DNA from: Bugula neritina
Lineage: Eukaryota; Animalia; Bryozoa
Reading direction: 5' to 3'
Assembly: GCA_964035545.1 (NCBI GenBank)
Contig: OZ037767.1
Span: 11,108,581-11,172,580, forward strand
DNA length: 64,000 bases
Below the pieces are notes generated by a model. It had not been told where the DNA came from. It searched no databases and was given only the letters and a program-made list of their open reading frames with translations. Each line of letters starts with the position of its first letter. Position 1 is the first letter of the stretch. Shown one piece after another: positions 6,001-64,000 of this stretch. Position numbers and translations under genes: made by a program.

Positions 6001-9000
6001 ATAAGTATAGGAAAAACTCATGCATATATGAACGGATTCTTAAAATGAAATTGAAGGCATTAAATAACTAAAATAAAATGTGACTCCAACTTGAAACAAG
6101 CACGGAAATCTCAATTAGAAAAGTCATAACAAAGCATGCATCACACAAACTTATAAAAATAAGCATTAGCAATAGTACTAGTTGTGGTAGTAACAGTGGT
6201 AGTAACAGTAATAGTAGAAGTAGAATAAGTAATGGCATTCAGCAAGTATAACATGCTTAGTAATAGTTAATGAAAATATAGATTAGTAATACAAATTGTA
6301 AAGTTTAGCATTTGTCTGCAATCGCAGAAACTAAGTGTCTAGATAGCATATAGAAAGAAATGCACAGCGTCTTGATTTGCCAGGCAATTTACATAACAAT
6401 TAAGTGTAGTTATGGGAACATGCTCCAGTGAAAGTGCAATCCATGATTGTGATAACAGTAATCGTAGGTATTGCTACAATAGTCAGCAGTACTGCATTGT
6501 AACAGTAGTCGTAGTTGTGGTAGTAGTTATAGTGGTGGTAGTAGTAGTAATAGTAGCAGTAGTAGTAGTAATAGTAGCAGTAGTAATAGTAGTAGTAATG
6601 GTACTAATAGTACATTGACAATAATGTGGTGCTTCACAAAAATAACTAGGGTTATGGCCATAACAAAAGTATTATCTGTTTGTTCACACAGCAATAATAA
6701 AACATACTCTACCTGACGATACACTTTTCACTATACAACAAAAAATACATACTCAGTAAGTATTGGATGCATGTCACTCGTGCAGCCACAGTGACATAGC
6801 TACACCAGTTCACTGACAGACAGTATATAAAGTAAGCTACAACTACCACATAAACTCAACAGGAAACAGGAATAGATGTGTACATTACCTAGCTGCTGTT
6901 GTCTGCATGTAGCCCTCAGAACAAACTGCTGCAGTTCATAAATACTGCATACACCGAGTTGGCCGACCAGATAGCTGTTTCTCAACTGGAAGGCGAGCAC
7001 GTTGGACACCCCTACAACTTTCTCAGAGAAATGAGATCCACAGCTAAGAGCTAGCCTCTCTATCAGCCCGTGTAGGCTGATTAGATTGTGCAGATTCACA
7101 AAGAAAGCCCACTTCTCCTCATTGCTGTTTAGAAGGTCAAGGTCAACTTTTTGTAGCATACTGGTGCGGGAACAGAACTGAAGAAATGACTCGCTGACCT
7201 TGATTTCTTGAGCGATTTCTTCAGTAAGCAGCTTAGCTCGGTTTGCCCGAAGTGCATCTAAACATCAAATAAGCATAGAAAGTTACTAACAGCAACTCGC
7301 AACAACTTGTGACAACTAAGTAACGTGTTAGAATTGATAAACTTTGCCACTACACTGAACCTAGATGATTTTTATGGCCATGTGGTGGTTTTATTATTTT
7401 GTCAAGATATACCGATAAAATTCATACAGAAAAGTTCCCTTTGAAACTTACCTTCGACCACCAAGAGCAGTGTGTCTAGCAGGTCTGTGACGAGTTCCAT
7501 AGGATTCTTATGTGAGTCAGAGGTGCATTGTGAGTCAACACTGTTATTGAGAACTACTCTATACCCGTGCCTCTGCCCCTCATTGGCCTCAGATCTCTCA
7601 TCTTCTGACAGAACATTATAAGTGGATTATAATTTAGTAGAACGTAATTGAAGAAAGCCAAGTATAAACATACCATTCTGCTTTACAAAAACTCATTAAA
7701 CTCATGACCGCTTCCACCAGTGCTCATAAAATACTCAGATGGCCAATGAAGTGCCCGGAAGACTGAAACTTTCTTTATACAAATTACTGCTGCACTAAAA
7801 ATATTCCTACATTTGAGAAACTTAAATGATGAGTTTATCATAATATTAGAGATGAGATGAGTGACTGGATAAGGCCAACAGCAAATCTAACCGAATTTAG
7901 TTGAAGACACATTTAGTACAAAAGACATACCAGCTGTAGATGGTTCCGGAAGAGGTAAGGGTTTACATGGTACAGGAGCACAACAGCTCCTTACTATCAC
8001 ATGTGTTAGATCCAATTTTACTTCCTTAGCAACAGTCTCCAACCTGTAAAAAGACGTTGATTAGCAAAGAGCAAATAAATCTACTTGCGCTCATGGTGCA
8101 ATTTTTGGCTCCAGACATGCTGATAACATGGTTTCTGAAGCAGTACAGAAACAGATGTCTTCTCCGACATCAACCTTGTGGAGCTTCAACTGCACACCTA
8201 ACACACCGTGTGACTTTGTTACGGAAACAGCCATGCTTATGGCCAACAAGAAGCCGGCATAAAAAGCTATTATGATAGATACAACATTATGTATGGAGTA
8301 GATCTAGGCTGGGTTACTCAAAGCCATTGCCTAAGATGAGGGAATAATTAGTTATGCTTGGAAAAGAGCCTCAGAGTAGTACTGGAAAGAGTTGTCTACC
8401 ATTAGACTAACAAGATCTCTAAACGCATCGTATACCTGAGGATAGAATGATTTAATTATATCAGAGAAAATACATACTTGGAAGGCTCGACTTGGTTGTC
8501 AAACATAAGTCTGCCAGCAATCATGGTGGGCCCCTCGTCAAGGATGGAGAGATGAGCAAAAGACGAGTCTTCTGTAAATGTGATTCATCAGAGATATGCT
8601 TGTCATTTCATAAATAATATCCAATCAATAATCATATACAAAACTTTGTCTTATAGTTTTATAGTCAACCTAAATGCACAGAGTATAACCTGGATAGTTG
8701 AAGGAGAGTTTAGACTTTCACACAGCTCTGCTCAATACATAAATCAAAAATCCCAACTTACTAAATGCATGGACATGTGTGAACAGCCCCAAAAATACAA
8801 CAGAGTGTCCCAGCACTTTGGCTAAAATTTGAGCACAGTTTCAGTATATGATTTAGAAAAACTAAAATTTCTCTTATCCCATGCAAAGATTTTCTGGTCA
8901 ACACTGATGAATGAAGATATAGTTACAAACCAAATACAAAACTTTACCTGCAGGAGGTGAACCAGTGTTTTTGATGATAGTCTGGTGTAGCAGTTCCAAT

Positions 9001-15000: not shown

Positions 15001-17982
15001 TCTAATAGAGCTGCAAATTGCTATTTAACATAACTGTAGATATTTGTATCTTGTTATCTAATAGAGCTGCAGATTGCTATTTAACATAACTGTAGATATT
15101 TGTATATCGGTATTTAATAGAGCTGCAGATTGTCACAGGCATTAGCTACAAGTTATAAAATTTAGAAACAATCTGATGGTAGTGGGGTTAAAACCCTAAG
15201 AAGCATGAATTTATCTTCTACCCTCAGCCAATCAAACAAAGAGAGGGGTACCAGTTGTAGGCTGATTGGCTCACCGTAGGCACTGCTCGCTGTAAGAGTT
15301 TGCATCATCTTCTGGTGACTCCAACCGTGGAGAGAGTCAAGACAGAGCAGCAGGGCGTGCAGAACACTCTGTGAGTTCACAATAGACATGATGCCAGACG
15401 CTGACTCTGCAGATCTCCTGTCAGCATTGCTAACAAATTAAATAATAATTACTATATTACATAGCATTTTATAGTATATAGAGTATATTATTATATAGTA
15501 TATATAGTATATTATATAGTATATGTAGTAATATATAGCATATATAACATATAGAGTATACATACATGTAGCATATAGAATATATCTAGTATACAGCGTA
15601 TAATTATAGTATACAGCGCATATGGGGGTTGGCACAAAATAGACAACTTGGCATGCATTCTTTAAAGCTACAGAATACATTTTTAAAAAAATTAAAAACT
15701 AGATTATATGTATTCATACTTATTGCTTAGATTTTTTAGCTTTTCACACACTTTTCAAAACTTTTGATAACTCATAGCTTGATTTATATGTTAGCAGAAA
15801 ATTCATAAGTCAGTTTACATTTACATTATTTATTTAATAAAATTGGGTCAGGTACATCTGTGCACAAACCAACCTGGACAGATTGAGACTCTGCTCTATC
15901 ACATCAATTCTCTGATGCTGATCTACAAGAGCCTTCAACTTCACATCATTTATCTGTAAAGCCAGACCACAGGCTAAATATAATTGTGCATAGCATTATC
16001 TTATCTTGTATTAATGAAACAAGATGGTATTGCATGTTTATCAGTAATTCATTATTCAAGAAAGCAGATAAAATACCTCGGTTGGAGTGACACGAAGCCA
16101 CCAGAAATTAAACATATTATGGTGAACTGACCTTTGAAAATGCAGTAAGGAGCTGGTGGCTCTGCTCAGCACTGCTACATTGTCTCCACGCCAAATGTAA
16201 GATAACAGGAAGTAGAGGGCGCCACTCATCCGTGTTGAGCATGTCGACTAGTTCAACGTAATCACCTCCCTTCATTAGCTTGCTAGCATTTGCCTACATG
16301 TTGAAAAACTTGTGTATATTCTACTATACAGCAATACAGTTAAGTCTTCTAAAAAGCCTTTTAAAATTTAATTCTCAACACTTCATAAACCTTCAAAACA
16401 AACTTAGTCTAGTTTACAGCAATAAAGTTAAAAAGTATTATAAAAAGTCTTCTAAAATTTGAACTTGTAAAACAAACTTATCTATGTGATTTTAGTTTCC
16501 CTCATGATGGCTGTACTTACCATTATAACATCAAAGAAGTGGGTTTGTGAGCCAATTGTATTCAGCGCAATGACCTTCCATTTATCATAAGACCCACAAC
16601 TGCTGTCCAAACTATCCCATAATTCTCTGCATATCTTCTGAGTCAACTCATACATGGATTTATCGGGCCGACTGACCAGTGCAATGTTTAACTCACTGAC
16701 TTCCAGCCATCCAGTGTGTTCTATCGAGAACATTTTATAGCATAAACTAGTTTCACATCTGCAGTCAAAGTCTTTGAATAAAATTACAATAATCTGTCGC
16801 AAGTTTTCTTAGCAAAAAGTCTCTTAAGGGTCATGTGACTCATGCATTAGTCATGTGACTCATGTATTGGTCATGTGACTCATGTATTGATCATGTGACT
16901 CATGTATTGGTCATGTGACTCATGTATTGATCATGTGACTCATGTATTGATCATGTCACTTATAGAGTGGTCACATGTCTCATGGAGCTTAGCTTGTTAC
17001 CCTTGTAGAACCATCAAATACAGGCATTAATTAGCACAGCATATCTCTTGAGCCTGCTTGAACTATCATATGCAAATGTAATTGTTCAAAGGAAGTCATG
17101 ATTATCCGTCAATTATATTAAAAGATACAAAACTAAAAGGAAAATTAGTAAAAAAAATTCAGAAAAATCTTTTTACACTTTATGAAAGCCAAATAAAAAG
17201 TGATCGTATATGTTATTTTCCACACATTTTTTATTCTTATACGGAGAAGTTTACCTTGATTATCAATGGACAAGACTACTCTGCTGATTATATCTTCCAA
17301 CCTGTCTTGGATACCATCAATTTCCAGATTTATCTCAGCTAGAGACAGCAAAGTGCACATAGACTTCTTGTTCTGTGAATAAGAAGAAATAATGACTCTA
17401 AGATCAAGGGAATCCTGCTGCTACTGATATCGCTGCTACTACTACTATCACTACTACTACTACTATCACTACTACTACTACTACTATCACTACTACTACT
17501 ACTACTATCACTACTACTACTACTATTACTACTACTAGCACTACTACTACTATCACTACTACTACTACTATCACTACTACTACTACTAGTATCACTACTA
17601 CTACTACTATCACTACTACTACTACTACTATCACTACTACTACTACTACTACTAGCACTACTACTACTATCACTACTACTACTACTATCACTACTACTAC
17701 TACTAGTATCACTACTACTACTACTACTATCACTACTACTACTACTACTATCACTACTACTACTACTACTATCACTACTACTACTACTACTACTACTAGC
17801 ACTACTACTACTATCACTACTACTACTACTATCACTACTACTACTGCTAGTATCACTACTACTACTACTATCACTACTACTACTATCACTACTACTACTA
17901 CTACTACTATCACTACTACTACTATCACTACTACTACTACTATCACTACCACTACTACTAGTATCACTACTACTACTACTAT

Positions 17983-18053
<71 letters not shown>

Positions 18054-20120
18054 TCACTACTACTACTACTTAAGCTTGTTCTAAAACAAACTATACTTTT
18101 CAGGTGTTGGGGCCACAATCAGCGTTAATGTGATCCTGATGCATCTCCACATAAAAATATGATCAATATTAGTTCTAGTGGCATCAACTAACGCTATGAC
18201 GAGGGCTCTGCATGCACTGCACTATCAGATACTCAATTACCGCAGTAGAGTAGTGACATTACATCTGACATACAGAGAGTTGTGACAATCTATATCATAC
18301 TATATCTACCATATATAGCTGCCTACTTTTTGTTGAAAACTCTGTTCAATAGCATCCAGTAACAAGTTGTTCATCTGAAACTCCATCTCCTCATGTTGAA
18401 TGAATGAAAGAAGTGGAATAGCTAACTCAGTACGACTAATCAGTGCAGAACCAAGAAACTCACGGCATTCAGCTGATAAGGTACTTTGAGATGTCTGTTG
18501 TAAATTATACAGTTCCTGCAACACCAAAAACTATGCTATATCCTTCCACTACTGTACGATACCATTCTACTACTGTAGGGTATCATTCTACTACTGTACA
18601 GCATAACATTATAGAATGTGTTATAAAATTTTATAACCCTTTAGTTTTCTGCTTTAACTGCAAATACATTATTTCAAAAAACAAACTTTAACCTAGCCAA
18701 TGCTGTTTTTCATCTCCATGTTAATACTATAATAGATATATACACATACATAATGTTTTCATGTGTAAATTTAAGACGGATTGACTTAACAAGTGGTTTT
18801 GAGGGTCATTGAGAAACCTTACATTACTGTAGCTTACTCTACAATAATCAATGTGGATAGAAAATGTGTGAAATTTTAAATATATTCATACACTTCTACT
18901 ATGTATAAGCAGATTCATAGATTTGTACTAAGAATTTAGTGACCTGATCAATGACTATTACCTTAACGACTTTCACATCACAATCGGCATAAAGTTCCGC
19001 AATTAGAAATCGAAACTCCAAACTTCTTTGCAAGTTTTCCACCTGTGTAAATAATATGACATATTCATTATAAGTCAAACAAAATATAAAAGGAGAATCT
19101 CTAGCTTAAGACTATTGCGAAATACATTCCTAAAATCATTATTGCAAGCCAAGACAATTACATAACATTGTTGAATACTAAAGAACCAGAACAACATCCA
19201 CCTCTACTCAAAGGTAGGAATATTGGTTCAAAAATTAAAACATATATAGGTGTTTGCCCATTTATCAAAACTGAAAATTCCATTTTCGATAAAAACATCT
19301 AGAGCTATGAATTTATCAATATCTTGTAGCAAAATATTTTGGCTGTACCTGAAGCTTAGAATCTTCAATTTGTTTGTATTCTACAAAGCATGGCCATATT
19401 AAAGGGTGTAGGTATTCACCAGCTTCACTACAAATCAAAGTGGCATTAATAGTAGAATAAAACAGAACATCGGTAGTACCATGAGTGACTAAATAAACCC
19501 CAATTCCAAAACTTAGCTGCAAAAAGCTGTGGCTTCAAAATTAAATTTTTATCACTCCATATATAAAAATGATCTTATTATAAAGAGAATCAGAACAAAA
19601 TTGAAAATTATTCCAACTACTAGTTCATTACTTGTAATTGTATTTGCATCACTACTTTTTATGCAACATTAAGATTAGGATTTATATAATAGCACTCAGT
19701 ACTGCCACAGCTAATATGAGTACTGTTGTACTACTAGTTGAGTAGTTGTACTACAGCTATTAAACTTAGTATAAGTAATACTCGAATAGTATTATATTTT
19801 TAATCATTTAGTTTTACTTTTAGCTTTACTTTAAGTTTATGACTTTATCCAATTATCAGTAATACTATTAGTAATATCCGTATTACATGCATATGAGTAG
19901 ATTACCTGGTACACCATTTATTAACAACTTTTTGCAAAACATCTTTGACTGGATATCTTAAATTTTTCTGTTCACTGTGAAGTGTTTCAATACAAGCTTT
20001 AGCACACTCAAATTGACCAATATAAATATAGTTGCAAAAAGATCTAAATAATAGTTGAACAGATGCTTCGTGCTCCCTTCCAAAAGGATATCTCAAGGCA
20101 AGTATTTCAGCCACTTCCAT
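22..20120 (-). CDS. ZFYVE26: Spastizin / zinc finger FYVE domain-containing protein 26 homologue, 5' portion (about 30 exons; continues beyond the left edge)
   Basis: First exon 20120..19906 reads MEVAEILALRYPFGREHEASVQLLFRSFCNYIYIGQFECAKAC, resembling the spastizin N-terminus (HPFGKE..SQKQLFGFFCECLRRGEWELAQAC). In-phase GT-AG exons follow (19427..19349, 19043..18962, 18516..18326, ... 271..22). The last exon in the window ends CAG|gtaagt. The FYVE domain is not in the window, and not every internal boundary was checked. Confidence 0.8.
3790..4125 (-). mobile_element. tRNA-derived SINE-like element in a ZFYVE26 intron
   Basis: Minus strand begins cccaTGGTCTAGTGGttagagcactggtttggtaaacacaaggttagtGGTTTAAATCC (A box, degenerate B box, no intact cloverleaf). 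About 270 bp of GC-richer body follows and ends in a (TA/CATA) tail. Confidence 0.55.
4140..4380. repeat. About 31-bp C-rich minisatellite containing copies of a ZFYVE26 splice donor
   Basis: Repeated cccacctgcactgccccatcccagc units; the minus strand reads CAG|gtgggt in each. Confidence 0.85.
4940..5037. repeat. 24-bp tandem repeat, about 4 copies
   Basis: attcaagacatagtaatataatat units. Confidence 0.85.
6500..6612. repeat. (GTA/TAG)n trinucleotide microsatellite
   Basis: Direct inspection; explains the poly-V and poly-L ORFs. Confidence 0.9.
9090..9382. repeat. Degenerate TAGTGAGTAC-based minisatellite
   Basis: Direct inspection; intronic. Confidence 0.85.
10560..10700. repeat. 20-bp minisatellite (gtgactgtgagtgagtcagt), about 7 copies
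   Basis: Direct inspection. Confidence 0.85.
14897..15133. repeat. 56-bp tandem repeat, about 4.2 copies
   Basis: agctgcagattgctatttaacataactgtagatatttgtatcttgttatctaatag units start at 14897, 14953, 15009, 15065 and 15121. Confidence 0.9.
16830..16985. repeat. 20-bp minisatellite (tcatgtgactcatgtattgg), about 7 copies
   Basis: Direct inspection. Confidence 0.9.
17420..18070. repeat. Long (TAC/ACT)n trinucleotide array with ATC interruptions, intronic
   Basis: Lies between a phase-0 donor at about 18326 and a phase-0 acceptor (ttcttattcacag|AAC AAG) at about 17373. Confidence 0.9.
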
Positions 20121-20923: not shown

Positions 20924-21530
20924 ATGACTTGTCGGCCCCTAACGAGCTCGGTTGGAGCTCGGTTGATTGCATACAAAGCCTTGGGCTTGTGTTTACCACA
21001 CCTAGAGTATGCTAGCGCAGCTTGGGACCCAACCTGCAAGAAGGATATTTCTGGCTTAAAGATACAAGTGGATGCAGTGCGATTCACAGCTGATGTTAAA
21101 TGCCGTGAAGATGTCGAAAGTACCATGAAGAGACTCTGCCTACAATCTCTTGAACAAAGAAGGAAAACCAGATGTGTTAATCTCCTCACGAAAAGTCTGG
21201 CAAAAGAAGAACACCTGGCTCTCAGCTCTGCCTATGATGACCTGCTGAACAAACCAACAAACAGCACCATACAGACTCACTCCCAAGCAAGGGAACAGCC
21301 CCAATCAGCACTATGTACCTAAACAGTTTTTTCTCAAGGACTATCCGGGACCTGAAAATTGTTCACAATCAAAGCAATAATTCAGAGATCTCTACATAGA
21401 CAGGATTAAGTTCCTGTTCAGTAAATACAGCCCAAACAGTACTAACTGTATGACTATTGACCAATGACTGTCCAACACATTACCCATATGCGGTACACCT
21501 CTTCCTCTCTCTAGGACGGTCCAGTGTGAT
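20924..21530 (+). mobile_element. 5'-truncated non-LTR retrotransposon (CR1/L2-like) RT C-terminus and 3' tail
   Basis: AYKALGLCLPHLEYASAAWDP...LQSLEQRR is the typical post-RT LINE segment. Related to the copy at 32-33 kb. Confidence 0.8.
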
Positions 21531-32059: not shown

Positions 32060-33085
32060 CTCACCTCGTAGACGATAGAACACTCAATCAGTCAATGTCA
32101 CCGTTATGGTGCAAACGTGGAGCGCCTCTTAGTCTTTGGTCAGTGATAAATGTCAGTATGAGTTAGTATAGCAGCATATAGCTGTTTATTGTTGTGTGTT
32201 AGTTGACCTTAGCTTCAGATCTCTCACACTGCATGTGAGAAAACTGTTAAAATAGACCTTGGTCGCAGCATACGTAAATGTTGGCTCACCTCTCTGTGCA
32301 GCTCGCGTATACATAGTGTACTTATTTTTATTTTTAGTCAGTTCATCATAAGCTGAGGCTAAGGTTTGGTGTTTAGATTCATCTGAGAGGATTCTCATTA
32401 ACAGTGACAACCTATGTGTTTTTCTTCAGTCATTGAGAAGTTGTAGTTCGAGTTTATTTCGAGCTTCTGAGATGCCTTGTCTTCCTTTGATATTGTTAAT
32501 GAACCTGATTGCTTGGGACTGTACACGCTCTAAGGCATCGATATTAGCTGAATCCACTGGGTCCCAAAGAGTATCACCGTATTCTAGAATTGGTCGGCAG
32601 AGACTGGTGTATGCGAGTAGTTTGCTATTGGCAGGGGCTTCATAAAGCGAGTATTTTATGCAACCTAGGACCTTGGAGGCACTTTTGATCTTAGATGTAA
32701 TATGTTGCTCAAATTTTAAGTTGGACTGCAAAATTATACCAAGATATTTGATCTCCTGTCTGCATTTGAGCGGAGTTCCACCAAGTGCATAGCTGGGGTC
32801 AAACACTGGATATGCCTTTGGGGCTTTGCTAAAGATGATCACCTCACACTTTTCCGTGTTAAAAGGCATTTTCCATTTCATGGACCACTTATGTAGAGCA
32901 TCTATATTTGTCTGGAAAAGCTGCTTGTCCTCATTGCTAATCACAGCAGCATAAATCAGGGTGTCATCGGCATAGAGACTCACTTTGCATGTTATCACTT
33001 GTGGTAGGTCATTTATGTATATAAGAAACAAGGTTGGCCCTAGTACCGAACCCTGTAGTACCCTCGAGGAGACAGGGAAATCTGA
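32060..33085 (-). mobile_element. 5'-truncated LINE (CR1/L2-like) reverse transcriptase fragment
   Basis: QGSVLGPTLFLIYINDLP...LYADDT...W.M.FN.EKC...KYLG...AYTSLCRPILEY. An in-frame TGA at 32426-32428 separates the two listed ORFs. Confidence 0.9.
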
Positions 33086-43855: not shown

Positions 43856-50129
<6,274 letters not shown>

Positions 50130-51327
50130 TAAACTTTCTTGTATTCCCACACTTGGTGTGACAACTCCAAAAGCATTCCGCTACGTAAACTACATTTGCT
50201 TCAACTGTTTTTCCTATACATTCTGCTATGTGTTCACACTTTTATCCAAGATGTTCTCAGCGATATAAATGTCCAATTTTTGCTCACTCACTTTATATGA
50301 TTTATATTTAATATTTATGTTTTGTTGTGTTGAATCTCATTTTAAACTGCTCATGGTTAGAAATCTCTCAAGCAAATAATATTTGTATGTCTATTATATA
50401 TTCATGTGTTTTCTACCTATTCCGTCAATGGTAATAATTTGCCTATAATTGAAGCAACATATTGATATTAGTAATGTTGAATTGATAAAATATAGTAGCC
50501 ATCCAGTATTACTCATTGTTTTGGTAATGATAATTCTTTAATAAAAAGAACGCTCATTGTGTTTTTTCCATGCTTAGATTTCGAAAATTTAAACTAGGCT
50601 TCACAGAACTACAAGTAATAAATATAACAAGTGTTCTATATTATTACACAGGAGTGTACTATACCTGCACCATTAATCCCCAAATTCAACAGTACACACA
50701 CCATAATATAAGCCCATTACAAGAACTAAATAGTAACTTAGATAGTGAAAACCAATGTTTTTTAATGTTTGTGATAAAAGCTCCAATAGAAACTGGTCAT
50801 TTCTGGTTCCCCTGCGCCTAATTCTATTAAAATGTAATCTTTCTATATTTCATAATTTCTAGAAATATTCATAGTTGATTATATATAGGTACAATCTTTT
50901 ATATGATATTATGTTGTGATTCTATGCTGCAGGAAGGGGGGGGGTATTGCAGGAGGGAAATTTTTAAGGGGTTTGTTACAAACGCCAAGACTGGTGTAAC
51001 GCTTTTATAAGGTATTTCTTTTTTTTTTTCTTGATTTCGGTCACCATCGCTTTCATGAGAGAAATTTGTTACCATGTAATAAGTTTTGGTCATAAGTTGT
51101 CCAGTTGAACTGTGTAGTTAAAAGGCACTCAAAAAGACTAGTTGATCTGCAGTATAAAGAAACAATGGAGCTGTATCAAGTAAATAAGCCAGTTATTAAG
51201 TTTCTGCAATACACTTTATTTTTTTCAAAAAATTATAACTATTTGGCAAAGGTGACACGAAGTAAAAGCACTTAACATCATCTACATAATATTATATTGC
51301 ATCACGCATGAATCAATTGACTCTATA

Positions 51328-54300
51328 TTACAAGCAACGATGGAAAACGGGAAGCTCTACTGCAGTTCCGCTTCGATATCCACAAGCCCTTTGCAGACAA
51401 CCCATTTCTACCCGTGAATAAGTCAAGTACCGGGTGTAGATTTGTTGAGAGGACAACCCCGTTACCTACAGAATAAGTCCAGATGACATATCAACACATA
51501 TATAATAGAAAGGGTGGCAGGTGAAAGTAACAACATATGTGACTTCTTGATTGAATATTAGTAGCCTACATTGTATATTAGTAGTGTCTTACATTGAATA
51601 TTAGTAGTCACTTACATTATGCACACTAGGATTGCACTCCTTTGCACTACCAAACTCCATGACATCTGCAATTCTATACATTGTGTTGTTCAACTGAGTA
51701 AAGTCCTCATTACTCTGCCGGAAGAAGGAAGACAGCATACAGCGGTATTTCTCCAGACGTTCTGTTATGCTGTCGGGTAAATACTAAAATATAAATTAGA
51801 ACTGACTGTTTGAAACTCTGAGAAATTCACTGATAGTTGTTCCTAGCAGATGCATAGTGTTGGCTAAAAATATTGTTTTAATAATTGGAGCAGATGCCTA
51901 GTGATTAAAACGCAGACTTGAGTAGTGAGAACATTGATAGAAGCAGCACAGAGTTAGGGGTGACCAAGAAGAGTATCTGTACATCGTTGTCAAACTACAG
52001 AGCCAATGTACCAAACTAAAAGCATCAAACCAATGCATTCAGTGAGTTCTAACTCAGTGCTGCTTCAAGCGATTTTTTAGAATGAGAATTGATCAATCCA
52101 GTCAGGAAAAGCATCCTTTCCTATCGGTAAACCCCTCAAGCACTGTTTGAGTCAGAAAAGTTTCATTGGGCTCCTACTGGACAGGAAAACGTCCAATGAA
52201 ATGTCATGGATTGTGCCCAATAATAGACTTTGAGTGTGTCTAGGGGGTTAGCCTGCTTGTGAACTTTTATCAACTGAAACTCTCACAGAAAAGAAGACTT
52301 TAACCTAACATAATAATAATATGCTCACCAAGAGGTCTTCACAGATAAATTTCTGGTTAGTAGTTATTGGTCTTCCTCCTGCCGAACACATGGTTGTTCT
52401 CTGCAAGACAATACTCAAACTTATACCACAAATTTATATATAATTGAATGCAGCATTGTTAATTACTAAAATTATGAACTATACAAATTATCACTTCGTC
52501 ACAAATTCTACCCTATAAACTATAACATATACAAAATATTATTTTGTTATTTAGCCTACACTTATAATTCATATAACATGCATGTCTATTGCAACCCATT
52601 ATTCCTTAATACTTGTTTACATACTTGGCCACTCTATATATCTATAAATAGTTCCTGTGTGGAATGCAATAGAACTTTTTAGATTATATCAAATTAGCAT
52701 AAAAGCAGATGCTCTATTTATAAACATCGGTTCGACAATGAAGTATCTTATAACCTTGTGCCATTTAAAAGTGAATATATTGCAACCATGCAGCTAGTGA
52801 AATGTATATCATTGTGACTAATTAGCTTATAATGTATTGCATAGTCTTGTTAAGCATTTGCACATTCTCAACATACCATATAATTGGTGTTTAAAATCTC
52901 CAGTAGTTCATAAGTCTCTCTGATATCATCACCCCACGCTGGTGTCTTATTGGAACAATATTCTGGTCCTGAGTATGGCCCGTTTGGATCTCTAAAATAT
53001 ATACTTCCATAAAAATGTCTAAAATTATATTCTAGTCTTTTTATTAGTCTCCAAAATAATATTAATAATGTATTTTTAGTAAATGAAATTATAGAAATCA
53101 TACTCCTACTGTGACATAGCTGTTAGAGTAAAGAGATATGTATATTGTATAAATATTATTTTTCCAAATATAAAAACTTTATAAGATAAAGTTTTGTTTA
53201 CAAACCGCAGCAGTGTTAGAGCATCTGACTGCATAACGAAATAAATTATAATTTTAAAAGCCTTGCTAAAAATAGTTGAGTTAAGGTGGGCAATTTACTG
53301 GCAGTGATGAAAAACAGGAATCTCTATAGCTGCGCCACTTTCATCTCCACAGTACTGCTGCAGACAAGCTATTTCTACTTGTAAGCCAATCAGATTTTGA
53401 GAATAGATGCGTTCTACTGACAATCCTCTTATCTACAAAATAATTTCATACAAAAACCTTAAGAAAATCATAAAATAAACAAATAATAGCAGACAGAAGT
53501 CCTGACATGTATTATGACTTAAAATCTTGAACTATGCATCAGTAACTTATATTTTATTTTAGTGACCTACATTGTATATCTGAGAACTAACATATATTAA
53601 ATTAACTAACATTGTATTGTATATTAGTGACTTACACTGTAGAACAGTTAACAACATTGCAATCACAGAGCTCTTAGAAAACTGAGGCAGTATATGTACT
53701 TACATTGTGCACACTGGGATTGCACTCTCTTGCACTACTAGGCTCAAGAAAGCCAATGATGCTATGCACAAGGTTGTTCAACTCAAGAAATTCTTCACTA
53801 CTTTGTTGAAAGAACGAATACAGCATACAGCGGTATTTCTGCAGGCGTTCAGTGGTATTGGCAGCTAAATACTGAAACATAAAAAATTTCCAACTGAGCT
53901 TCACCAATCTCCTACGATAAAGATTATCAACAACTTTGAAATGCATTGCTTTTAGACTGGAAAATAATGCATTAATATAGCTAATTGCGTATTTTGCTAC
54001 ATGTAGTCAAAATGCAGAACAAAATAACAATACTCTATGGATTATGGCAGAATAGCAATGCAGCTAGTCAAGGTGCACAAGCCATGGTAGAAAACTCAAC
54101 TAATTGGGTTTAACTTCCTTCCAATAGTCAAAGTTTCGGTTTACTTAGTTTTGAATTCAACAATTTGGATTTGCCATTAATTAGCTTCTCAGTTTAAGTT
54201 TGAAAGCATGCCTTAAACGGTAAACTTGTTGTTTGAATATGGGTAGTTATTCATAAAATTAGTCACACTTCCTATTTAAAAGATGGTAAAGTGACTGTAC

Positions 54301-57300
54301 TTACCCTTAAATCTTCACAGTAGAACTTCTGGTTATAGCTGACCGGTTCAGGTTCATCACCAGTAAGGCACATGGCAAGGTCCTTTAATAAACAAGAGAT
54401 ATGTTGTTATATAATGTTACAGTTGGCAGCCTTTAATAAATATATGTTATAGCCTATTTTTGTATAGAATACAGTTAAGAGAAGTTACCAATTACATAAT
54501 TTTTCAAATGTTTAGGTTTATTAAGAACTGATGCTTTCTTACAAAGGGTGGGGGGTTTAATAACTTTACTATAGCACCCAACCCAGGGAGGTGAAATAAA
54601 TTATTAAATGCCTGAATAACGTTACACCTACATGCATTTCATCAGAATTAGAATATCCAAAGCTCTAGTTAGCTTTGTTAGCTGCATTAAAATGCGACAA
54701 CTGAGAAATTCTAATACCTTAAATTTCTTAGGCACTATATTAAAAATAATGGTTTGGGCTGCAGTTTAAAATTATTGGTTAAACTGCACCCCCTGTCCCC
54801 TTAGTCGCTGTTCACCTACCACATAATGGGTGTTCCAATAAGTTAGCATGCTGGAAGCCATTTCAAGGTAAGTGATATGAGGAGCTGCATGGTAAGTACA
54901 GTATGGGTCGACTGATCTTTTTTCTACTCTTAGAGTGTTCCTATGAAGAGAAGTATACTACTTTCAATAATAAAAAAACATCATCATATGTAAAGCATCT
55001 AATCTATAGGCCTACACTAAAGTTATTTTTATCAATTTTTTGTTTGCATTCGTAGAAATTAAAAGCCCATAATTTAGAAAGAATTTTTTTATATCTTTTC
55101 AATTTAGTATACTTTGAATAATTTTCTTTTCCAAATAATTGCTGTTACATAAAATCGCAATTGATGAAGTACTATAGTAAATTTACAGTTGAAATTTGAC
55201 TAGCAGTAGTTTATACTATCCACAGTTAGTTTAAGGTCATACTTTTCATTTTCTGGCTCTTTGCCAGGTGCTTTATGTTCTATATGAACAATGTTCCACT
55301 GATAGCTCGAACAGGTTGAATGTCACAGGAACAAAAAAAATATGAAAAGATAAAGAAACTTATGTTCTCCAATATACTTTTTTATTTTTTTCAAAAGCCA
55401 ATTCATGTTTAAGTTATAGCTTGTTGAAAAACATAGTCCCCCTTCCACATTCTTATCAATTTATACGCTCCTGACTTGTTATTGCGTCTCAATATGCCTT
55501 GTATTTGAGTGCTTGTTAGTCTCGCTTCACTAACTTTGCCTATACTTCACAAGTGCCAGTGCTGCTGGCTCAAAAGCTAAATGTTATAATAAACTGTCAG
55601 CTAAAACCCAATCTTGTATTCCTAGGTTGGTTGGCCTAAATAAAACAATAGTCAAATCATGATTTCATGTTTTAAAAATTTACTCTATTCTAACCTGCTG
55701 CCTAGCTAGTTCTATTTTTGATGTATAATTACAAAATTTGTGATACATTTTTTTGGCAACCATGTGATTTATAAAATGCAGTAATGGTACTTATAATATT
55801 ATATTATTATCATTATAATATATTATATAGTATTATGTGTGTTTTTATTATACTGCATAATATCTATTTTATTATTGTTGTTGTGCAAACAAGTGCAATT
55901 AACCTAGTTTTCAAAATGTACCTCTAAATTATCAGAATATCAGTTTAGATATTTTCATGCTTTGTAAGGTAAACCTAAAAAAAGAGGCTGTATTCCCAAA
56001 GTAAAGGGTGTTGAACTATGAACTATATTAGATTAGCCACTCTGCTACCAAGTGCATCAGTATAATATTATATGAATAGCTCTGATGCTTTGTCTCCGTG
56101 GCTGGCTGCGATATGATAACTTGGCCAACTTCCAAGAGTTTAAAATTGGCGCAATTATTCAAGAGGTTACATACTGCACAGAGCTAGCAGTGATAGTAAC
56201 CTTGCTATTGGCTGTACTTATTACAACTGCCAGCATATAAGCTGCATTGTAGAATGCCGTTGGGGTAGGCTAGTAAAACCAAATTCTGCTCTCTAATATA
56301 CCTTAGACACAATGCAGCAACATAATTGTTCGTTTCAAATTACATTGCCACCCTTACATGAGCTGTGGGCTTCATAAAGATTCATATGATTAGAGATTTA
56401 TGCTATAGGCTAGCTATGATGAAAAGAAAACACCATTGTCAAAGTTAACTTCAAGTATGTTGTTTTCCAGAAACTCAGTAATGTCCATTTATATCTCTCG
56501 CATACAAATACTTATGTAATAGCATACAGTTTAAGTTTTATTTTAGAGCACATCTGCAAACTCTACAATAAGAGCTTGCTTTACCAGTCTATTTCAGACC
56601 TGTTTTTGTAGCTAGTAATACGCAAGCTACTTATTTTTAAACTTTTGGGTTATTTGTTCAAAACCATTAGCTTTGATAGTAACCCGAGACTATTGCAACA
56701 GTTGACTGCTATCAACATGAATTGACAGCCTAATAATTATAACCCATTTGCGCGCGAAATATTTATGTAATGATAGTTACTCATATAATGCGCGACTCTT
56801 TTACGATCACAGCGTGGTCCAGAGGTTAGAGGCGTCAGCGACGAGTTGGTTGGTCATGGTTCAACCCTGATTTGTTGCAATTTTTTTGTCAACTTATGCA
56901 AATCCTACGCATGTATAATAAATATGGCTATAATTGTAAAGTTTTTTTTTAACTTTTGTTCAACAGTAAGACAACATACATGCATAATAATTAGATACTG
57001 AACACTGGACTAAACCTTGAAATGATCTTATAGAATACAATGTACTTAAAATAATCATATGTGAATTAGAGAAACCTTTACTGACAAGACTGCAAAGTGA
57101 AGTGATTTAGCTGAAATTAACTCTGCCAAACAAACAAAGAATTATGTTGTGCTGAGGCATTTTCAATATATTATTGTAACATAGTGAGATGATTCAGCTA
57201 AGTGCTAATGTAAAACAGGGAACATTATATTGGCAGAAATCCAATAGATTGCCAATTTGTGCGAGAGGGTACTATATGTTATTGTGATAGCGCAGAGCGG

Positions 57301-58198
57301 CAAACGTACTAGGAATGTTATAATTAGTCACAGGAGCGTAGCTAGAACCACCATATGAAGAATTTAGATAATTGCAGTGAAACTTGCAATATGGTGTATG
57401 TTTTTACCAAATTGTGAAGAGCATAAACAGAATTTCAAAAAACAAAGAAAGTATATTAGAGAAAACATATCAAGGAATGTCAAGTTTAACTTTTAGACTT
57501 TATAAAATGAATCCCCTGTGCTACAGCAGTGGAACATGGAGGGTGTAAAATTTTACTTATTATGCAACAACTTTCTCAGAAAATTTTTTATTGAAAAATT
57601 AAAAAAGTATATGAAAGAGGAATGCAAGAGCTATCTTTTCATGTAAAATTTGTTAATGTGAGACAAAAACTGTTCGAGCTATCCCCTGGAAACCGTTTAT
57701 ATATAACATAAAGCAGTGCCTGAATGTGGAAAGTAATGACCTTAAACTAACTGTGTCGATAAAATGATAAACTTTTATATATTCGTACCTTCCAGAATTC
57801 TGAAGACTAGCTGGATTCACATCCACTACACCAACCATCAGTACAGCGAATATCACGAGAGATATGCTAGTTACTTTGCCTACAAGTATGCATTAAAACA
57901 GCTTAAATAGAAAATGTCCTTCAACACCAATAGCTTAATCAGCAAAATAAAAATTTGGTTTTAAATTTTAGTCTTATAAAAGAAAGACCATTTTAACTTT
58001 AAAAGGCATTATATAAAAATACTAATAACCAATCATCATGTGACAGTGACTAAAATAAAAAGTTATAACACAACGTAGAATATAATATTAATTATGACAG
58101 AGACATGTTGCAGCAAATCCGATAAAAAATAATTAATAGTATATTTCTTAAATTTGCCTTTTGGCTGTTTAATAATTAATTAATCAACACATACCCAT
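51328..58198 (-). CDS. Uncharacterised secreted precursor, 362 aa, with two tandem 8-Cys predicted-helical domains (four-helix-cytokine-like architecture)
   Basis: Exons 58198-58195, 57879-57789, 54940-54820, 54382-54305, 53871-53704, 53432-53299, 52991-52877, 52400-52329, 51783-51616, 51465-51328, all GT-AG and phase-compatible (1089 nt). Signal-like N-terminus, VEKR dibasic site and an internal four-exon duplication. TATA box upstream; AATAAA at 51220-51215. Confidence 0.8.
56805..56890 (+). mobile_element. tRNA-derived SINE head or tRNA pseudogene
   Basis: gcgTGGTCCAGAGGttagaggcgtcag...catGGTTCAACCC followed by a T-run; A and B boxes present, no proper cloverleaf. Confidence 0.5.
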
Positions 58199-58322
58199 TT
58201 TCACTTTGAGCAACAGGGTTATAAAAAGACAGCTTGTCGGGGTAAAGAAGTAATTTCTCAGTTCTAAAGTATTAACCAGGTAAGGAGCTCAGCAGGTATG
58301 GAGGAAGGGCTTCAGCTACAAG

Positions 58323-58330
58323 CTTTTATA
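58323..58330 (-). promoter_or_regulatory. TATA box of the secreted tandem-domain gene
   Basis: TATAAAAG on the minus strand, about 125 nt upstream of ATG G|gtatgt. Confidence 0.5.

Positions 58331-62719: not shown

Positions 62720-64000
<1,281 letters not shown>

Follow-up and report, generated by a model that had tools for sequence, protein, structure and literature searches.

The window analyzed here is a stretch of 64,000 nucleotides (nt) from the bryozoan Bugula neritina (contig OZ037767.1, positions 11,108,581 to 11,172,580), and its central feature is a minus-strand gene at window positions 51328-58198 that encodes a protein of two related domains with eight cysteines each. This two-domain gene is real and transcribed. 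Ten phase-compatible exons had been proposed from the letters alone in what we call the original prediction, with a first exon of ATG plus G ahead of a phase-1 intron and with phase-0 introns inside the domains; three-frame translation and a listing of AG and GT sites bear out each of these points. All introns are GT-AG, and the joined exons give an open coding sequence of 1089 nt including the stop, with no internal stops, for a product of 362 amino acids (aa) containing 16 Cys. Exons 3-6 make up domain 1 and exons 7-10 domain 2. The parts of the gene are as follows.

58195-58198, minus strand: coding part of exon 1, ATG plus G, then a phase-1 intron with donor GTATGT; joined to exon 2 in the RNA of two runs
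57789-57879, minus strand: exon 2, 91 nt, predicted signal peptide and start of the propeptide, then a phase-2 intron; RNA joints on both sides
54820-54940, minus strand: exon 3, 121 nt, encoding the last part of the propeptide with Lys-Arg (KR), then Cys1 and an amphipathic stretch assigned to helix A of domain 1; phase 0 after
54305-54382, minus strand: exon 4, 78 nt, encoding a long loop that holds Cys2 and Cys3; phase 0 after
53704-53871, minus strand: exon 5, 168 nt, encoding two helices together with Cys4 and Cys5; phase 0 after
53299-53432, minus strand: exon 6, 134 nt, encoding a short helix, then a long one bearing Cys6 and Cys7, and finally the C-terminal strand and Cys8; phase 2 after
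52877-52991, minus strand: exon 7, 115 nt, linker and the counterpart of exon 3 (E3-type exon) in domain 2, with Cys1′; phase 0 after
52329-52400, minus strand: exon 8, 72 nt, E4-type exon of domain 2; phase 0 after
51616-51783, minus strand: exon 9, 168 nt, E5-type exon of domain 2, a fragment of which is database entry P0002; phase 0 after
51328-51465, minus strand: exon 10, 135 nt and the TAA stop (51328-51330), E6-type exon of domain 2
51215-51220, minus strand: AATAAA, probable polyadenylation signal, 107 nt past the stop codon

Through the first domain the intron phases run 1, 2, 0, 0, 0, and exons 2 and 3 taken together restore phase 0. Domain 1 is linked to domain 2 by the exon 6 donor, CA/GTAAAT, whose GT overlaps an in-frame TAA that marks the exact end point of the single-domain relatives described below.

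Transcription of the Gene

RNA contigs from four data sets of four studies, whose run labels are guesses, were aligned over 52280-58260. The RNA check of the junctions that had been called for gave exact joints from exon 1/exon 2 through exon 7/exon 8, at 57879/58195, 54940/57789, 54382/54820, 53871/54305, 53432/53704, 52991/53299 and 52400/52877, and joints of this exactness have no possible source other than spliced RNA. The joint between exons 6 and 7 (52991/53299), which links the domains, is present in all four runs. The exon 8 donor is supported as well, by a contig that continues past 52329 into letters resembling the start of exon 9; for the exon 9/exon 10 junction the grounds are its GT-AG sites, the phase and the comparison with paralogs. 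Most of the mRNA is spanned by a single contig of 1193 nt. Contig depth is high in one of the data sets, a measure that cannot rank expression.

Protein Anatomy

The features read into the protein at the outset, a signal-like N terminus, a propeptide with a dibasic end, two related domains of about 160 aa with eight equivalent Cys each, and N-glycan sequons, are all found in the assembled product. Its most hydrophobic 15-mer begins at residue 6, and the rest of the protein has no membrane-like stretch. The sole dibasic site is the KR at residues 39-40, directly ahead of domain 1, and the upstream neighbor of the gene conserves it in the form KKR, with no change in the two residues that come next. 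The layout is that of a prohormone, a signal peptide and then a propeptide ending in a dibasic convertase site, at which cleavage is predicted. The domains measure 158 and 163 aa and are 48% identical, with their Cys in register; because no dibasic site lies between them, they should remain joined. The predicted mature protein, about 322 aa, is acidic (38 Asp and Glu versus 24 Lys and Arg). Four N-x-S/T sequons occur in the 362-aa product, and repeats and low-complexity regions are absent.

Constraint against a Second Bugula Lineage

Orthologs of these exons, found in a second Bugula assembly and in a Joint Genome Institute (JGI) contig, are 82-95% identical to those of the window, versus mostly 73-86% for collinear genomic blocks; in the comparison of the two lineages the exons stand at 92-95%. 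Over 1071 sites we counted 49 synonymous and 27 non-synonymous differences, corresponding to a synonymous divergence (dS) of 0.25, a non-synonymous divergence (dN) of 0.033 and a dN/dS ratio of 0.13, and 16 of 16 Cys are retained in the second lineage. Given this ratio and the complete retention of Cys, the gene is under clear purifying selection. In the other lineage exon 4 lacks 6 nt without a change of frame, a shortening that the RNA contigs share, and the gene table of the other assembly lists a 357-aa product for the ortholog, which none of the sequence searches described below recovered. The two lineages also differ in intron 2, which in the window carries the following feature.

55219-57763, strand not given: repeat-rich insertion of about 2.5 kb, missing from the other Bugula assembly, whose second intron measures 233 nt

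Very many high-depth RNA contigs cover this insertion, which is why it probably consists of repeats or mobile elements. A tRNA-like stretch lies in the same intron near 56790-56880; ARAGORN calls no tRNA there.

A Family of Eight-Cysteine Domains

Exon-wise searches and growing profiles, applied to the genome from which the window comes, found about 12 family loci, on C3, C9 (about four), C5, C8 (three), C6 and C4. Among those examined, the gene at 51328-58198 is the only two-domain locus. The four-exon domain plan is kept (121, 72-78, 165-168 and 134-144 nt, internal introns phase 0), and in the loci worked out (C9, C5 and the neighbor) exon sizes and phases are the same, with a two-helix exon of 165-168 nt and a last exon of 135-144 nt. 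Five aligned domains share eight invariant Cys over about 155 aa at pairwise identities of 24-48%, and further members were seen exon by exon. Divergent members stand in tandem arrays at C9:7104094-7127183 (about four) and C8:7302404-7324354 (three).

Single exons used as queries revealed a third copy of the domain just upstream of the two-domain gene.

62723-64000, minus strand: 3′ half of the upstream single-domain paralog, with its last exon at 62723-62866 and an E5-type exon that starts at 63961 and crosses the window end

The paralog reaches the window-equivalent position 67143. Its first exon is again ATG plus G, followed by exons of 91, 121, 72, 168 and 144 nt, and it encodes a single-domain protein of 200 aa. 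Its annotated product is P0001 (hypothetical protein EB796_016964, Bugula neritina), which is 40% identical per domain to the two-domain gene; this model from the National Center for Biotechnology Information is truncated to 137 aa and lacks exons 1-3 and the last Cys. Since the single-domain neighbor has the same first exon and the same exon sizes, the most plausible origin of the two-domain gene is a tandem duplication of four exons within it. The eight-Cys domain defines a new orphan multigene family, made up of secreted helical proteins and known to date from Bugula alone.

Relatives Sought Outside the Family

The author of the original prediction recognized no known family, and our searches agree. 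Eight exons compared with Pfam gave nothing meaningful, and P0001 matched no Pfam family at E values up to 10. Protein Data Bank (PDB) sequences searched with P0001 and with profile A6 returned only noise, the S100B match standing at an E value of 0.22. A profile of the two-helix exon (exon 5), run against 1.84 billion representative sequences, recovered only P0001 and P0002, both from Bugula. Two other entries, P0003 and P0004, were treated as spurious repeat artefacts; their matches are 6-7 short stretches of long proteins. Word-index searches with P0001, A6 and the further alignment A9 found only P0001 itself and exon-sized Bugula fragments (P0005-P0010) from a JGI metagenome, with no full-length member of the family among them, and none of these searches led outside Bugula. 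No loci related to P0001 were found in metagenome contigs, the ESM Atlas gave no usable feature match for P0001 (its own model of the protein has a mean predicted local distance difference test score [pLDDT] of 0.50), and literature searches yielded nothing on an eight-Cys family in Bugula.

A Partial Structural Model

The folding input was P0001, which comprises the loop, two-helix and last exons of the neighbor, without helix A, Cys1 and Cys8. AlphaFold2 was run on it twice, with fragment alignments A6 and A9; alignments A5 and A10 were discarded for misplaced exon 5 fragments. Both runs agree on four helices and a two-stranded ribbon (pLDDT 64 and 67, predicted template modeling score 0.56). 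In P0001 numbering the elements are a strand at about 15-22, helices at 30/33-48/51, 55-68, 75/76-88 and 94-113, and a strand at about 121-128. The helices are connected by loops of 3-7 residues, and the strand of the paralog models that lies ahead of the helices maps to exon 4. Three quarters of the domain are helical in nature. In addition, the family-averaged hydrophobic moment has an amphipathic periodicity that supports an extra helix in the E3-type exon. Since the E5- and E6-type exons alone model as four helices, and the amphipathic E3 stretch adds another, five helices per domain are probable.

Up-down bundles are what the partial model fits best; its likeness to cytokines does not rise above noise. 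The structural part of the original prediction, which gave each domain four amphipathic stretches and the fold of a four-helix cytokine, to be checked by AlphaFold and Foldseek, holds in outline and shifts in detail. The helices probably number five, four of them modeled in the E5- and E6-type exons and one suggested by the amphipathic stretch of the E3-type exon; the modeled part is a helical bundle, and its connectivity, in a partial paralog model that does not contain helix A, appears to be up-down. The Foldseek half of the check, run with the P0001 models, returned no match at E < 0.001.

Other Features of the Window

The remaining observations concern sequence outside the two-domain gene.

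17339-18118, minus strand: open frame of 259 aa consisting almost only of Ser/Asp runs, overlapped by an all-Val/Ile frame; it could be a serine-rich coding exon or else a long tract of simple sequence
32426-33031, minus strand: reverse-transcriptase fragment (Pfam RVT_1, E value 4e-9), likely a non-LTR (long terminal repeat) retroelement remnant
20924-21322, plus strand: open frame resembling the RVT_1 fragment, likely also a non-LTR retroelement remnant
6800-7159, minus strand: DUF547 match (E value 1.3e-6), probable exon of an ordinary gene
46748-47101, plus strand: weak class I/II aminotransferase match (E value 0.003), probable exon of an ordinary gene
49419-50150 and 62861-63493: long TA-rich microsatellites with spurious open frames in several frames, one of them inside an intron of the neighboring paralog

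Interpretation

We think it fairly probable that the locus is a functional gene of Bugula neritina whose product, a two-domain protein, is secreted, rich in disulfides and largely helical. This protein would most likely serve as a soluble extracellular ligand or binding protein. The origin of the gene can be pictured in a few steps. In a single-domain gene like the upstream neighbor, the domain exons E3-E6 were probably duplicated in tandem within the gene, and the stop codon of the first copy was lost through use of a donor overlapping the old TAA. In the protein made today, the signal peptide would be removed and the propeptide cut at the single KR site, releasing a mature acidic glycoprotein with up to four disulfides per domain. 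Such a protein would then most likely act as a soluble ligand or binding protein in which two covalently linked domains approximate a built-in dimer.

Several points weigh against this reading. The models are of moderate confidence only (pLDDT 64-67) and cover the domain without helix A, Cys1 and Cys8, and neither Pfam, nor PDB, nor the representative or word-index searches offered a homolog of known function. Cleavage at KR, glycosylation and disulfide pairing are features that we infer, and a structural, inhibitory or defensive role would suit the data equally well.

The original prediction went further and proposed a candidate cytokine- or hormone-like ligand. On this hypothesis the protein would be a true class-I-like helical cytokine with up-up-down-down topology, the missing type of JAK/STAT ligand in lophotrochozoans; helix A would be encoded in the E3-type exon, the AB crossover would be the 25-aa loop of the E4-type exon, and the CD crossover would include the short helix found where E5 and E6 meet, as it includes the mini-helix in IL-6 and helix D in type I interferons. 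IL-6, G-CSF and GH genes have a tiny first coding exon, a phase-1 intron, and then phase-0 introns between the helices. The Bugula gene likewise has a tiny first exon and, with exons 2 and 3 merged, phases of 1 and then 0, 0, 0, and it gives one exon each to helix A, the loop, a pair of helices and the final helix. The short first exon and the succession of phases are thus of cytokine type, a correspondence that by itself is weak evidence. The long loop after helix A suits a crossover; moreover, the order of the helices and the shortness of their loops suggest that the second and the fourth of the long helices run parallel in the partial models, as helices C and D would. Geometrically, a cytokine-like arrangement is still possible, with helix A and the 25-aa loop supplying the AB crossover and the short third helix falling in the CD crossover, and a model lacking helix A may have placed the short helix in A's position. 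Exons matching STAT_bind and the JAK-type FERM_F2 are present in the genome, no ligand family is annotated, and we know of no JAK/STAT ligand from any lophotrochozoan.

Against these points stands the failure to find sequence or profile similarity to any cytokine family, in Pfam up to an E value of 10 or among PDB sequences. Neither as many as eight Cys in each domain nor a tandem of two domains is known to be typical of the cytokine class. IL6Ra-bind and Jak1_Phl had no match in exon-wise genome searches, which are insensitive and not evidence of absence. We regard cytokine status as open and somewhat disfavored, and the hypothesis as unlikely. Slightly less likely again is its fullest form, in which the family would comprise the lophotrochozoan helical-cytokine ligands of JAK/STAT, diverged beyond sequence recognition, and the protein with its two domains, as a covalent pseudo-dimer, would cross-link a pair of receptor chains.

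Another proposal is a protein that acts outside the cell as a binder or inhibitor. Its core would be a four-helix bundle of the up-down type, extended by a helical part at the N terminus, and it would block an enzyme or sequester a molecule and not signal. In shape it would be analogous to the pectin-methylesterase inhibitors (PMEI) and invertase inhibitors of plants, or to carriers of small ligands. The plant inhibitors are likewise secreted, disulfide-stapled proteins of about 150 aa, and expansion in tandem arrays, as on C9 and C8, is common for defense or inhibitor genes. However, P0001 did not match Pfam PMEI even at an E value of 10, the number and pattern of Cys differ from those of PMEI, and no target enzyme is known; this proposal, too, strikes us as improbable. 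Least likely is a structural or defensive component of a secretion (cuticle, adhesive matrix, antimicrobial or antifouling factor) with no specific receptor, a use to which expanded, lineage-restricted families of secreted Cys-rich proteins are often put and with which the contig depth in one RNA data set and the acidity of the mature protein would agree, but the protein has no repeats or low-complexity regions, full-length purifying selection and a compact globular helical prediction suit a specific binder better than a matrix protein, and the acidic charge counts against a classical cationic antimicrobial peptide.

Whichever role applies to the secreted two-domain protein that we favor, the family merits attention. 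To our knowledge, bryozoans are almost unexplored at the molecular level, and these proteins, with no relatives in any searched database, are concrete candidates for cell-cell signals, inhibitors or defense factors. The birth of a two-domain protein can also be followed cleanly at this locus: four exons were duplicated in place, and the copies were joined by a donor that overlaps the old stop. Should a structure of the full domain turn out to have cytokine topology, the ligand question could be tested directly; should it not, the family would still represent a new variant of disulfide-stapled helical fold.

Comparison with Known Systems

Two known systems invite comparison. The fold of the plant PMEI and invertase inhibitors (PF04043) is restricted to plants and differs from the Bugula domain in the count and spacing of its Cys, and the likeness between them falls within the range of generic helical bundles. 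The class I long-chain cytokines (IL-6, G-CSF, GH and PRL, and Unpaired of the fly) resemble the Bugula protein in being secreted, in having a helical domain of about 155-160 aa, and in the tiny first exon and the pattern of intron phases. Unlike them, the Bugula protein could form up to four disulfides per domain and has its two domains in tandem, and its gene carries an extra signal-peptide exon followed by a phase-2 intron.

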